DNA from: Adineta vaga
Taxonomy: Eukaryota > Animalia > Rotifera
NCBI GenBank assembly: GCA_021613535.1
Contig: CP075496.1
Location: forward strand, 10,974,001-11,038,000
Length of the DNA stretch: 64,000 nucleotides
Direction of reading: 5' to 3'
A program made the translations under genes and the position numbers. The notes beneath the pieces are model-generated. The model did not search any database and had not been told where the DNA came from. It worked only from the letters and a program-made list of their open reading frames with translations. Below are positions 49,825-55,793 of the stretch, in pieces; within the stretch, counting starts at the first letter, position 1, and every line of letters starts with the position of its first letter.

Positions 49825-50885
49825 GAAAAACATAAAAAGATCTATTTGATTTTGTATTTATTCCTTTTTCTTTCTTTGAATATCACAATTATAGCTTGAT
49901 TCTTATTATTTCATCTTTTATCTATGTAACAAATGAATTACGTCATGTTGTAAATAAAGTTCTGCTTCTGACACTGTCGCAATTCACAATTATTGTTCAA
50001 GAAGTGGTCTTCGAATTGTTCTGATTAGCATAATGATTTTTGAAGAATGTTTCGCAATATTTTTTCTATTGCATTTATAATAACAGCTTGATTGTTATCG
50101 TACAATACCAATAGACGAATAACTCATTTTGTCATGTTGTCGAACTTGTCTTTTACAACGCAATTCAATTATAAAGAAAGAACAATAGTTGAAGTCGAGA
50201 CGATTAGTGTTATGTTTTATTTTTGTTTTCATAACTCTACAATTGATTGAACAAGTCATTCTTATTCTTCATATGTCATCATAAATTATAGTATAGTCGA
50301 TGATCTCTCATGTTTAAAATACATATTTTTATGTTATTCAAAATAGGGAAGAAGATAATCTAAATTTACTCTTTACTACATTAACATGTTTTAAATAAAC
50401 GATTTTATTATTGAAACATAGGCAATTATGTAAATTTTTTGCATGAACAATGTACGTGAGAAATTTGATTTGGACGTGTCAAATCGAGATATACATCTTA
50501 ATTTACTAAAAATGATAAAAATCTAAATGAAAATAAATTGATCAACACCACTCTTTTCTACATAAAGAATTAACACTATTGTTATTATTTTCTTTCAGAA
50601 GAATTTATTCGTCATCTTTGATTATCTAAATACAGCATCGCTTTCTAAATGGTCATAAAAGAGCGAGAGAAAAAAAATGTATATACACATATAAACATAT
50701 ATCGGCTAGACGAGACTGCACATATATTCTCTTCTCTTCTGATCACGCCTATTCATTCATTTCTATTCAACAATTTGTTCATACATCAGTCACAGTCACT
50801 AAGGACAATAATAAAAAGTAAGATATTCCATTACTATTTTTCAAATAATTTCTTCTGTAATTTTTAGTTAATCCTCATTTTTCCA

Positions 50886-51962
50886 ATGTCTATGAATAAT
50901 AATAATACTAATAACAATAGAAAACTTCTTTTTTCAAATTTATCTTATAAAACCAATGAACAAACATTAATGAACTTGTTTTTAATTTATGGTTGCATAG
51001 AAGAATTACATTTAGATAAAGATGATCAAGATCAATCATTACGTAAAGGTTTTCTTGTTTATCAAGATATTGATTCTTTAAATAAAGTCATGTTCAAAAG
51101 GCCACATATTCTTGACAATAGACAAATTCATCTTCAACGAGAAATTCCTAATCAATATCGAAATAGTACACAAAATCTATCTGAACAAATGGGTTTAAAT
51201 TTAACAGTCAATGAAATCTTTATTAGTCGTTTATGTTCGGGAGAAAAACGTGAAATGTTTATAAATTATTTTCAATCATTTGGAAATATAATTGATTGTC
51301 GAGTATTTAATACTTATTCACAAAATCCTCGCCAAACAGGTTATGCATTTTTACGTTTCGCAGACTACGATAGTGTTGGTAAGGTTCAACTTAATATGAA
51401 AATTCAATTGAATATATTTCTTTCTATTTAGATCAAATTATTCTTTCAAGACCACATGTAATCAATTCCAAATTTTATCACATCAGAAAATGTATACCAA
51501 GAGAATATAATTTTATCCTATCGTCAACAAAACCTATCAGTCAAAGTAAACAAATCTGGCGTCATTTTGGATTCGGTTTAATCAATATGAAAACACATGA
51601 AATTACTTATCCATCTTTACCTTCTATTCGGTAAGTGTAAAATTTTGATTTTCGGTAAAACAAAACCGAAGATTCAATGGAATTATGTTTATAGACATGA
51701 AAAAGTTCAATCTTCATCGAATGGTTTTACAATGATTGATCCACCTGCATTAACTGTTTCCGTTGATCGAACAGAATTGAAAAAAACTTCTATAAATGAT
51801 TTTGAAATTGTTACAAATCATTCTCTATCATCCAGTAGTATTTCAATTGTCGATTCCAATGATGATTTTACTCCATTAGCATCACCACTCTATTCAACAG
51901 CTATTGCTTATTCACCAACAGCATTTGATAATGATGTTCATAAAAATTATGAATTGATCTAA
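50886..51962 (+). CDS. Two-RRM RNA-binding protein (divergent hnRNP A/B / Musashi-like)
   Basis: Exons 50886-51378, 51432-51630 and 51695-51962. RKLLFSNL, RKGFLVY, RPHILDNR; EIFISRL, GYAFLRFADYDSVD. Confidence 0.82.
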
Positions 51963-52274
51963 TTAAAAACGATTTCTTTTTTTTGTGATGATGAATATTT
52001 AAATGGTATCTGTATATATAAATACGATTACCTTTCTCTTTATATGATCGGATGTCATCAATCTTAATCTTATTGTTTCTTTTTCATAAAATTTGCTTTT
52101 CTTTTCATTCATATTAATGTGTATCTATATTTGGTAAATAATAAATAGTATATGAATAAGATTTCTTTGTTCGAATTGCTTTCATTTGAAAACTAGTCAA
52201 GTGTAATAACTTTCTGACGCAGTTACTTTTCCTTCGTTGATAATATTTAGATTATTCACTAACGATTTAACAAG

Positions 52275-52412
52275 ATGGAAGATATATGCACTTGTGAATG
52301 TCATAGAAATCCTGGTGTCCGACATATAATGGCATGCTGTAGACCTTGCCCAAGATGTCAACAACCGATTACCAATCAGCAATATCAAGCACATATACAA
52401 AAGTGTCGTTAA
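52275..52412 (+). CDS. 45-aa Cys/His-rich zinc-binding microprotein (not in the ORF track)
   Basis: MEDICTCECHRNPGVRHIMACCRPCPRCQQPITNQQYQAHIQKCR*. Good start context (caagATGG), more GC-rich than the flanks, and AATAAA about 105 nt downstream. Confidence 0.7.
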   Translation: MEDICTCECHRNPGVRHIMACCRPCPRCQQPITNQQYQAHIQKCR

Positions 52413-53916
52413 ATATGTTTGAAAGACACTTGAACTGTTTTATCGATATACATGCAAACAACGCTTAACGCTTCCTTTTTACTCAATAGACTGTTTATTT
52501 ATTTTATGATAAGAAAAATAAATATTATAATGTTCTTAAATAAAAACAAAAGCCGATGAAATTCTAAACATGGAGAAGATTTCTTTAAAATAATTATTCA
52601 AAACCCAAAAACATATTCTTTCTAATAAGCTCGATTGAAAATAGTTAGAAAATAAGTTTGTCAGGCAATGGATTATATTATTTCGACTATTTTCTATCTA
52701 CTGACAAAATATTGAATAAAACCGATTATATTATCATAAAAAACAAATTACAATGTATACCCTGGATTAATACGAGAGAATTGATTTCCATGATCATTAA
52801 GACCAAGTTCGTGATTTGGTTCGATAACAAAAACGTATCCATAAAATATTTGCATCTCTGAACAGATGATAGCTCTTTTTTTCTTCAGAAAAAGAAATGA
52901 ACAAGCACTTTCCTACAGCATAGAAATGTATCTTGTATGGATGATTTGATAAATTAACGAACTTGTCTAGAAATAATTGTCATGTGTAATTATGCATATA
53001 AAACTATTTGTTCGTACGATGTTTGTCTCTTGTTGTTAGTTAGTCGAGAGAACTGTCAAGTGAATGTTCTTAGGAGAGAAATTGAACGAACAAAGAATTC
53101 ACATTGTCATCAACTCAATAGATCTTCAGTTAAACTAAGAAATTGATTGGAAAGAATATGTAACATGATGTGTAATTATTCATTACAAATCGGACCGATT
53201 CGTGTTTAATATAAAAACGATGACAATAAAAAACAGAAAATTCTATGCAAAAAGAAAAAGAACTTCTGATTAATAATTGACACTTCATTCACGTACACAA
53301 ATAGTGCTGTTTTTAAATAGTCTCCGGATATGCATACAAAAGACGTGAGAGTAACGAAGAGTCAACAGTGGTGACATAGAGATCATAGATAAAAGAAAAC
53401 TATTCTATAGAGTTTTCTTGACATGACTTTGTATTAATAGTTTTTTTGCTCGTGTATCAAAATTTGGTCTTAATCTTCAATGTTCACCACTATATTACTA
53501 AATAAATATCAATTAATATATAAACGAACGTCCTTTTTCATCTCTTTTGGTTCTACATCCATACAATAACATCACAAGAAAGAAGAAAGATGTAAATGTC
53601 GTTGATGAGAAGATCGAGTGTTTCTAACACGAATCATAATATCGAGACTAGTTTTTCTTCATTGTTAAGAACGCTGAGAGAAAACAGAAATAGCGATCCG
53701 CCTCCGCCTTTTTTTCTACATTTTTTTTTCTTCTTTCTCTTCTCGCGCTCATTCTCGACGGCACGATCGAAGAAAGGACAACAACTAATACTATATATAT
53801 TAGTACGCGAAAAAACATTTCTTCTTCTGTTCTATGTTACTATTATGTGCTCAAGTTAGACAGACGTAGGCATCATTAGAAATATCCGCCTGAAAACTAG
53901 AAGACACACACACACC

Positions 53917-55793
53917 ATGGTACGTATCAGATTTTTTTCTTCAAGAAAAAAAGAAATTTTCTTAATGGAATTGAATCGATTAGTAATAACCAATGTCTAT
54001 TCTTTTCAGAGATAAGAATTATGAATGCATCATTGACTTTGAGATTGATTGACAACACTTCGATATAAAATTGCATAGAAATTAACTTTTGAAAAACTAC
54101 TTTTGTTTTTTTTCTTTCAAAAACAACCATGTTTTTATCGTTAGAATTACGTATATTTGTTCATTTCTTTAATTTAAATATTTAGAATCTTGATTCAATT
54201 CATCATCATTATGGTGTAATAATTGTTCTTATAACATTTCTAAGTCGAGTTGTATTTAATGGATTTTGTTGGAGTTATGGAACAGTTATTGTGGAATACA
54301 AAAAACAAAATTCAACTTTATCGGATACTGAAATGAGTATGTTATCTAACTTTCTTAGGACATAAGATAAGAAAATATTTTTTTGATTTAGGTTGGATTG
54401 GAAGTGTTGGTCAAAGTTTTGGTGGTATTCTTGCACCATTAATACTTTTGTGTAGTCATCGATTTGGATATCAATTATCATTTGTTGTATCATTAATTAT
54501 TTGTATTGCGTCTTTATTTTTCTCATCGATGGTAAAAAATCTTCATTGGCTTTTGTTAACATATTCACTTCCGTATGGTTTTGCTAATGCATCTATCTTC
54601 ATTCTTGGAACATTAGTTTGTGGTCTATACTTTCCTGCTGGTCAACACCCAAAACATATATTTGTCATGTGTATTATTTCAACTGGATTTCCAATTGGTT
54701 ATCATATCATGAGTGCATATATGTTTTCTACAATTCGAGAAAATGGTTGGCAATCAATGAAAAGACGTGTTGCTCTTATTGAATTACTAGTTACATGTCT
54801 TATTGGTCCATTATTTACAACAAAAGGTCTATTAAATTCTGCACAAGGATATCAATATCCAACGACACCTTTGATTCCAGGCAATAATCGAAAAATTTAT
54901 TATTCAAAACCGATCATTTATTGGATGTTAGGCATATTCTCTGCAATGTGTGCTGTGAACAATTTTCTTCTTCATTTGGTACGTATTTATCTATGAAATT
55001 TTGAGAGAGAAAAAAAAAAGAATCTACAAATAGCAATTTTTGAGAAACAAAAGATGCAAAAAGACATTAGTTTTTAATTGAAATAAAAATTTCCGTTTTC
55101 TATTTTCTTTTCAGCATAGTCATCTGGAATATTTACTTATGTCACCAGCACGCGCTGATCTTTGGTTTCGTTTACATGGTTTATTTGATGCATTATTTCG
55201 TTTATCAATTCCACTTTTGATTCGTTTTTATCCAATTGATATTATTTATTTATTTCCAGCAAGTGTTTTCACGGGTTTAATTGTTTTAACATTGACATTT
55301 GGTTTACTCTATACGAGTTTAAATGCATTAGCAATTTTACCAATTATTTGTAAGTGAAATTGTCTTTTTCTCGGAAGATTTTATGAATAATTTTGTTTTG
55401 ATTATAGTATTTAGCTTTACATCTGCTGTAGTCACAGCATTACAATATACAGTTTCGAATCGAATCTTTGAAGAAGATCGAACTGAACAAGGTTATATCT
55501 ATCATGTTATTATTACAAGTCTTGGAACAATTGTAGGTCCTGTTGTTGGAGGTAAGATATTTGAAGAAATGAAATATGAATGTATTGTATTTTGTTTTTT
55601 AGGTTTATTTCTTGATATGACAGGAAGTTATAAAGCAATCATTCCAACATCAATTTTCTTTCTATTCGTTAGTTTTATTTCATTTGGAGCAACAATATTA
55701 TTGTTAAATAAGAAAAAAGCGAACGAACTTGAAGAAAGTCAAACAGCATCGATTCATCAACATGATAATGTTGCATATGGTTCATCTTATTAA
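53917..55793 (+). CDS. MFS transporter, SLC16/monocarboxylate transporter-like
   Basis: ATG|GTACGT spliced to 54186 gives MNLDSIHHHYGVIIVLITF...SYG...EMSWIGSV...APL...HRFG. Also TYSLPYGF, multiple TM helices, and GPVVGGLFLDMTGSY. Confidence 0.8.

Follow-up and report, generated by a model that had tools for sequence, protein, structure and literature searches.

Is a reading frame of only 45 codons a gene, and, if it is, from where did the gene come and what would its product do? These questions are raised by a short open reading frame (ORF) at positions 52275-52412 (+) of a 64,000-nucleotide stretch of the genome of the bdelloid rotifer Adineta vaga (assembly GCA_021613535.1, contig CP075496.1, positions 10,974,001 to 11,038,000 of the forward strand), hereafter called the window. 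The frame had been singled out, from the letters alone, in an original prediction of an unannotated, cysteine- and histidine-rich microprotein. The analysis described here revealed that 52275-52412 is a genuine, intronless, separately transcribed and conserved A. vaga gene. The whole account that we favour, in which this gene encodes a zinc-module microprotein with an adaptor role that was horizontally acquired by the rotifer lineage and then duplicated, is given a probability of roughly 0.7.

A short, transcribed and conserved gene

The coding sequence comprises 45 codons followed by TAA (52275-52412, +), and its translation, a protein of 5.3 kDa, reproduced exactly the predicted 8 Cys and 3 His in the predicted spacing, C-x-C-x-C-H-x6-H-x3-C-C followed by C-P-x-C-x11-H-x3-C. 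The Cys are residues 5, 7, 9, 21, 22, 25, 28 and 44 and the His residues 10, 17 and 40, Cys and His together making up 24% of the protein. The strong start context and downstream AATAAA that had also been claimed were located as acaagATGg, with A at –3 and G at +4, and as two AATAAA hexamers 3′ of the ORF (52517-52522 and 52539-52544). Among the 122 ATG-started ORFs of 40-60 aa in the window, at least 8 Cys were found in this one only, the runner-up having 6, and block-shuffled windows gave an expectation of 0.025 ORFs of this size with at least 8 Cys per 64 kb. The gene sits on C4 of a 6-contig, 100.8-Mb assembly, where the G+C content of the window near the gene is 25-33%.

Contigs of four sequencing runs were placed on window positions 50400-53900. 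The runs are RNA, since the contigs of the gene lying upstream lack its GT..AG introns. One contig in each of the runs X1 and X3, which belong to different studies, had the identical span 52261-52556 (+). This span holds no intron and measures about 296 nt, of which 14 nt form the 5′ leader and 144 nt the 3′ untranslated region (UTR), and the contigs over it are distinct from the spliced ones of the gene upstream; contigs of this kind fix neither the exact transcript ends, nor the strand, nor the level. The X3 contig continues with 16 A and then GAA, letters absent from the genome, placing a poly(A) addition site at 52556 (+). The junction lies 17 nt beyond the first base of the hexamer at 52539-52544 (+), which is the polyadenylation signal apparently used, and the tail points in the direction expected of a monocistronic mRNA from the + strand, without introns and about 0.3 kb long. 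Word depth was 98 and 557 in the two contigs and about 15 in the neighbouring gene, contig depth being a poor measure of expression. No contig over the gene was found in the runs X6, which bears a different organism label, and X9.

A protein of 45 aa, 76% identical to the window protein, was found on metagenome scaffolds of about 29% G+C (P0005). The scaffold L012 (29.5% G+C) is collinear with window positions 51040-54629, that is, over 3.6 kb, and P0005 is therefore the orthologue from a related Adineta-like rotifer; it keeps the frame, the length and all 11 ligands. Comparison of the two genes by the Nei-Gojobori method yielded 0.80 synonymous (dS) and 0.117 nonsynonymous (dN) substitutions per site, with a dN/dS of 0.15, and nucleotide identity was 82% in the ORF, 69% in the 5′ flank and 62% in the 3′ UTR. 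The microprotein is thus kept under purifying selection.

A six-frame search of the A. vaga genome revealed two paralogues, one on C6 (8418400-8418552, 49% identity) and one on C5 (3687710-3687868, 44%). Both are ORFs of 50-51 codons that begin with an ATG in A-rich surroundings and are followed by an AATAAA. The three copies agree in all 8 Cys and 3 His and also in M1, D3, G14, A20 and K43. A family-profile search found no fourth copy in the genome, the full-length copies being those on C4, C6 and C5 only. No flanking genes were shared by the three loci when 10 kb upstream and 1.5 kb downstream were compared; they are dispersed copies and not visibly collinear duplicates. A word-based search of a collection of 5.8 billion proteins matched only the A. 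vaga chromosome-6 paralogue, deposited as 'hypothetical protein I4U23_029909 [Adineta vaga]', and the window protein, missing from that collection, therefore appears to be unannotated. With a transcript present and the Cys/His pattern kept in the orthologue and in both paralogues, the proposal of a real, unannotated microprotein was borne out by the transcript, its poly(A) tail, the orthologue and purifying selection.

An uncatalogued protein family

The window protein belongs to a widespread family for which Pfam, NCBIfam, PHROGs and PADLOC hold no model. A profile search of a collection of 15 billion proteins, including NCBI nr, EukProt and the Logan assemblies (1.84 billion representatives, clusters at 50% identity), revealed 491 proteins at E ≤ 1e-3, 11 of them at E ≤ 1e-10. 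Most of the matches are stand-alone proteins of 50-75 aa that align over the whole profile. The rotifer profile matched the non-rotifer proteins P0002 (E = 3.8e-20) and P0004 (E = 3.0e-18) over profile positions 1-45, and, in the reverse test, the family profile A2 matched the window at 8.7e-16.

The shared motif, CxCxCH-x6-H-x3-CC-x2-C-x2-C-x11-H-x3-C, was complete in 131 of the 151 proteins retrieved, and the 6/11 spacing of the window protein was the commonest (81 of 136 motif occurrences). All 11 Cys/His ligands were invariant in 88 aligned family members. Among 138 distinct 6/11-spaced domains, the first ten ligands were 100% conserved and the eleventh was Cys in 92% and His in 8%. Conservation in these domains extended beyond the ligands, with Ile at position 32 (92%), Pro or Ala at position 20 (85%), Tyr, Phe or Trp at position 36 (72%), Pro at position 26 (63%) and Glu, Asp or His two residues before the first Cys (82%). 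The N-terminal Cys/His cluster, composed of D3, C5, C7, C9, H10, H17, C21 and C22 (52281-52340, +), has its seven Cys and His invariant in both the 88 members and the 138 domains. The earlier impression that this cluster recalls small bacterial or phage proteins proved correct, the 42-residue motif recurring in hundreds of small phage, viral and bacterial proteins.

The window protein had no Pfam match at E ≤ 10, and NCBIfam gave none for the three rotifer proteins and for six of the seven homologues scanned, the seventh (P0002) having two sub-threshold matches of 17 bits against a cut-off of 109. The PHROGs search returned phrog_10717 alone (E = 0.0078), of unassigned function, and PADLOC nothing relevant. 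In the ESM Atlas, the feature search led to unnamed clusters at 0.83 and the fold search to look-alikes of the C-terminal finger only. In the literature searched, the motif was not mentioned, nor was anything found on A. vaga microproteins of such a kind.

Genomic contexts of the relatives

The best 150 hits of the profile search were drawn on for the inspection of contexts, and relatives in genomes and in IMG/VR were located by a degenerate motif pattern. The contigs with close relatives carried dense, co-directional small ORFs, often with 4-nt overlaps and mostly without a Pfam match, among which were scattered genes for a DNA methylase, a LAGLIDADG endonuclease, Phage_ABA_S, NAMPT/NAPRTase, PolyA_pol, Band_7 and AAA_28; this gene packing is a phage-like architecture. 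Two of the relative-bearing contigs agree in sample and size with IMG/VR viral contigs. In IMG/VR itself, the pattern was found in 22 stretches on contigs of 11-470 kb, about 19 of them genuine and 3 discarded as repeats, and a 447-kb contig showed gene packing of the phage style. No match was found among 50,697 GenBank phage records, covering cultured phages, by tblastn with the rotifer protein as query; to date, relatives in phages come from metagenomes alone.

The closest relative of the chromosome-6 paralogue (53%) was P0036 (ENA ERZ27253656; JGI 3300050821), whose neighbours are a WGR-PARP gene, an acetyltransferase gene and two class-I aminoacyl-tRNA-synthetase genes, a context that suggests a giant virus.

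Among species-representative prokaryotes, the pattern was found in 98 stretches in 185,579 genomes, about 77 of them genuine and about 10 discarded as Cys/His-codon repeats, against a chance expectation of about 0.03 (our own calculation, assuming uniform base composition). False positives of the pattern, due to low-complexity TGC/CAC-type repeats that read as poly-Cys/His in one frame or another, were seen and set aside at L022, L023, L030, L042, L043, L058, L060, L090, L096, L105, L120 and L129. The genuine bacterial matches included many Patescibacteria (Saccharibacteria, Kerfeldbacteria, Buchananbacteria and others), together with Gordonia (including cultured strains), Nitrospirota, Gemmatimonadales, Myxococcota and Singulisphaera, and one genuine archaeal match came from a Nitrosotalea bin. 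The module was present in 2 of 301 sampled Patescibacteria genomes, and its distribution is therefore patchy. In the bacterial neighbourhoods examined, no recurrent gene partner was found, ordinary housekeeping genes adjoining the module.

Every non-rotifer full-length context inspected was phage-like, viral or bacterial. The two matches with eukaryotic source names, a moth protein and an EukProt transcript, turned out to match the C-terminal finger alone, as repeated TRAF/XAF1-like fingers, and such multi-finger eukaryotic proteins align to profile positions 16-45.

Tandem copies and fusions

Besides standing alone, the module is found duplicated inside single proteins, such as P0002 and P0004. 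In the 0.9-Mb genome of a Candidatus Buchananbacteria, five tandem module matches were located within 1.1 kb (C10:410075-411205); a single match among the five is weak (E = 1e-4), and another reads through a TAA. Moreover, the module is fused to other domains. In Nitrospirota, it stands at the C-terminus of a Smr domain (Smr E = 4e-24; L034:5155-5619, –; likewise L021, L049 and L052), and this Smr-module gene adjoins an SLT/LysM transglycosylase gene. Further fusions are with NUDIX (P0015, E = 2e-12), with a YAcAr/DprA-like SLOG domain in phage contigs (P0139, L122:5947-6468, +, E = 1e-12) and with YunG (L024:3590-4159, E = 3e-32). Such promiscuous joining to catalytic domains is as expected of a binding or adaptor module.

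At least 7 Gordonia genomes encode a chromosomal protein of 177 aa with the module at its N-terminus and a hydrophobic, apparently membrane-spanning C-terminal region (L050:5130-5663, +; also L015, L025, L041, L061, L080, L108 and L109). In several of the Gordonia proteins, the C-terminal finger is a variant that does not satisfy the full motif, and at the L050 locus the gene is flanked on one side by DUF3710 and on the other by a gene whose match, a weak one, is RecG-wedge-like. A protein of 163 aa from a Logan contig (P0010) contains two N-terminal halves (C-x-C-x-C-H...H...C-C) without the C-terminal finger; because it carries two such halves only, the N-terminal cluster is possibly autonomous, a hint that it may fold or act alone.

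Probable horizontal origin of the rotifer gene

Because the family is otherwise one of phages, huge phages included, possibly of giant viruses, and of scattered bacteria, above all Patescibacteria, the rotifer gene probably derives from horizontal transfer. What had been suggested as a possibility in the original prediction is now the best reading, the full-length relatives inspected being viral or prokaryotic. Contamination is excluded because the rotifer copies are integrated, AT-rich, polyadenylated and conserved: the window gene resides in a chromosome contig, C4, next to a spliced host gene, has a polyadenylated transcript and has an orthologue in a collinear stretch of 3.6 kb. It resembles the bdelloid foreign genes in that its nearest full-length relatives are non-metazoan in the contexts inspected, and in its chromosomal location beside an intron-bearing host gene, its host-like AT-rich composition, its transcription and polyadenylation and its duplication. 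The foreign genes described in bdelloids are mostly ordinary-sized enzymes; unlike them, this one encodes a microprotein of 45 aa, too short for annotation cut-offs, and is related for the most part to genes of phages.

The approximately unbiased (AU) test did not reject a single rotifer clade (p-AU 0.6), the constrained tree having the higher likelihood. One acquisition followed by duplication would be the most economical reading, held provisionally because it is based on protein collections and not on DNA-level searches of animal genomes.

The alternative that survives best, which we consider unlikely, is an ancient eukaryotic or animal microprotein, vertically inherited and unannotated elsewhere, the phage and bacterial copies having been transferred or having arisen by convergence. 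It draws on the under-annotation of small ORFs in eukaryotes, on the resemblance of the C-terminal finger to eukaryotic UBZ, TRAF and XAF1 fingers and on P0036, which, adjoining PARP and two aminoacyl-tRNA-synthetase genes, looks like the gene of a giant virus of eukaryotes. However, no full-length eukaryotic relative beyond rotifer-like DNA, and no such animal relative, was found in the contexts inspected from the best 150 hits, and the full-length relatives are numerous and diverse in phages, several bacterial phyla and one archaeal bin; convergence is further opposed by the identity of all 11 ligands, their spacing and the core residues.

Predicted structure of the module

An AlphaFold2 model, built from the 88-sequence alignment, had a mean predicted local distance difference test score (pLDDT) of 86.6, with a short helix at residues 8-11, a β-hairpin made of the strands 22-24 and 31-33, and a second helix spanning residues 34-43. 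The C-terminal half (52347-52406, +) was modelled as a C2HC ββα finger with the ligands C25, C28, H40 and C44, at a pLDDT of about 90 and with weak similarity to UBZ, TRAF and Sgf11 fingers. Foldseek listed Sgf11, TRAF4 (E = 1.4), the UBZ domains of WRNIP1 and RAD18, CEP104 and NEMO, at E of about 1 and none significant, and VIA-align the UBZ domains of Pol eta and RAD18, Gtsf1 and Sgf11, with Z of 2.1-2.4 and likewise none significant. These neighbours align to about residues 13-45 only, and neither Foldseek nor VIA-align found a structural counterpart of the N-terminal cluster. Among sequence models, Pfam zf_UBZ (PF18439) matched one paralogue (E = 0.0033) and the bacterial homologue P0002 (26.2 bits, cut-off 25.6), and the Sgf11 model reached E of about 1e-3 for several homologues. 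A TRAF5 finger chain aligned weakly to residues 22-44 (E = 0.13), and zf-TRAF gave no Pfam match. The UBZ/TRAF-like C2HC spacing that had been pointed out therefore received weak but consistent support, from zf_UBZ, TRAF5, the ββα model and the non-significant structural neighbours.

The module can be set against three known systems. With the UBZ4 fingers of RAD18 and WRNIP1, it shares the C-x2-C-x11-H-x3-C spacing, the ββα fold seen in the model and the conservation of a hydrophobic residue that follows the second Cys. In RAD18 and WRNIP1, an Asp in the helix contacts ubiquitin. Unlike them, the window protein lacks this Asp, as had been observed at the outset, its residues 41-43 being I-Q-K (V/L/I, K/E/A and R/K/E in the family profile); it also lies below the zf_UBZ threshold, has a seven-ligand N-terminal cluster joined directly via a CC dipeptide and belongs to a mainly viral and bacterial family. 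The TRAF-type, XAF1/TRAFD1 and Sgf11 fingers are of the same C2HC type, and Sgf11 and TRAF4 are the top Foldseek neighbours, although no similarity to this group is significant; however, these are repeated fingers in large eukaryotic signalling and chromatin proteins, whereas the rotifer module is a single stand-alone protein of 45 aa with a unique N-terminal CxCxCH...H...CC cluster. Metallothioneins are Cys-rich and largely devoid of His, aromatic residues and regular secondary structure. The module resembles them and other CxC thiolate clusters in its high Cys content, CxCxC and CC, and differs from them in its three invariant His, its conserved hydrophobic and aromatic (position 36) residues, its fixed spacing and its predicted regular secondary structure.

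Proposed mechanism and rival functions

The mechanism that we infer, from zinc binding and its stoichiometry through the adaptor function to the direction and number of transfers, is the following. A module of about 42 residues, [E/D]-x-C-x-C-x-C-H-x6-H-x3-C-C-x2-C-x2-C-x11-H-x3-C, present in a single copy in the rotifer protein, would use C25, C28, H40 and C44 to form a ββα C2HC finger of the UBZ/TRAF/Sgf11 kind, and its seven N-terminal ligands, with the usually acidic residue, would hold one or two further zinc ions. Sequence-adjacent residues are unlikely to bind the same ion, and two or three Zn are proposed because of the 11 ligands and the acidic twelfth, the adjacent pairs C9-H10 and C21-C22, and CxCxC. 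The whole peptide would thus be a rigid multi-zinc knot, with two or three Zn per 45 residues, which would bind a protein or a nucleic acid, as an adaptor does, and would not store metal. The prokaryotic and phage copies of the module stand alone, in tandem or fused to Smr, SLOG/YAcAr, NUDIX, YunG or a membrane anchor, and in the rotifer lineage one transfer from a bacterial or viral donor would have been followed by duplication to three dispersed loci and by purifying selection. A structural multi-zinc binding module is the extent of our commitment on function, metal buffering and the reading of ubiquitin being ranked less likely.

A metal-buffering, metallothionein-like peptide would sequester Zn, Cd or Cu without a specific partner. 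This option, raised in the original prediction, fits the 24% of Cys and His, the CxCxC and CC typical of thiolate clusters and the high word depth of the RNA contig, and yet it is very improbable, being disfavoured by a ligand spacing fixed over hundreds of diverged relatives, by the conservation of a hydrophobic, non-ligand core (Ile32 in 92%, the aromatic residue at 36, Pro or Ala at 20) and by a confidently folded model with a canonical ββα finger. Moreover, the module is fused to enzymes and carried by phages, to which a metal store would be of little use.

A shade less probable still is a ubiquitin-binding UBZ adaptor, which would read ubiquitin in DNA-damage tolerance as the UBZ4 fingers of RAD18 and WRNIP1 do. 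It is favoured by the C2HC spacing, the predicted ββα fold, the weak zf_UBZ matches and the presence of UBZ domains (those of RAD18, WRNIP1 and Pol eta) near the top of the structural searches, and also by one Patescibacteria genome in which the homologue adjoins uvrC, uvrA and uvrB. Nevertheless, the helix Asp of UBZ4, absent from the window protein, is not conserved in the family, the structural scores are non-significant, and the phages and bacteria in which the family is mainly found lack ubiquitin. Finally, a chance ORF within a non-coding or 3′-UTR-derived RNA, for which a very short frame in an AT-rich genome with many spurious ORFs could be cited, is effectively refuted by the shuffled-window expectation, the dN/dS and intact frame in the orthologue, the motif kept by two paralogues and hundreds of homologues, and a transcript separate from that of the upstream gene.

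Several points weigh against the favoured account of a horizontally acquired zinc-module adaptor. No conserved gene partner that would point to a target of the adaptor was found in bacteria, and the net charge of the module, near neutral with a mean of +0.75, gives no clear nucleic-acid-binding signature. Translation and metal binding of the microprotein are both inferred, and RNA depth as read from contigs is a poor gauge of expression. With regard to its origin, a tree of 43 columns had 4 of its 209 branches supported, and neither the donor nor the number of transfers can therefore be named. The rotifer copies resemble phage proteins (36-55%) about as much as they resemble each other (44-49%). 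Lastly, the statement that no other animal homologue exists rests on protein databases and 11 inspected contexts, and eukaryotic small ORFs are rarely annotated. A bolder version of the account, in which a new zinc-finger architecture with three Zn, 11 ligands and an acidic residue, its thiolate-rich N-terminal cluster being joined to a UBZ-like finger, arose in phages as a small host-interaction factor, was captured by bdelloids and is abundantly expressed, is entertained as a tentative and rather doubtful idea.

Significance

Horizontal acquisition by bdelloids appears to reach microproteins, which annotation cut-offs hide from the standard screens for foreign genes. If the bolder version is true, the gene would rank with the smallest functional genes that any animal is known to have gained by horizontal transfer, and it would be of phage type. 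The analysis also exposes a sizeable uncatalogued family (491 clusters at 50% identity) in which a UBZ/TRAF-like finger is joined to a Cys/His cluster of a new kind, tying a finger type of eukaryotes to small proteins of phages and bacteria, which bears on the origin of UBZ/TRAF-type fingers. A peptide of 45 residues is an easy test object for synthesis, metal loading and nuclear magnetic resonance, and both phage-host pairs and a rotifer that survives desiccation and radiation are usable for the study of its function.

The upstream gene and RNA variants

The spliced gene upstream of the microprotein (about 50874-51969, in the region 50790-52062, +) has RNA contigs that end between 51969 and 52062 and lack the GT..AG introns 50818-50867, 51378-51430 and 51630-51693. 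Judged from the look of its translation, its product seems to be an RNA-binding protein of the RRM type. The possibility that the microprotein ORF was an exon or part of the 3′ UTR of this gene was rejected, because the microprotein contig is separate and of different depth and the upstream contigs stop at 51969-52062. Three differences were observed between the RNA contigs and the assembly, namely a synonymous G>A at 52403 (Lys43), present in the contigs of both X1 and X3, and G>A at 52489 and 52493 in the 3′ UTR, present in the X3 contig only; they are probably strain or allele differences.

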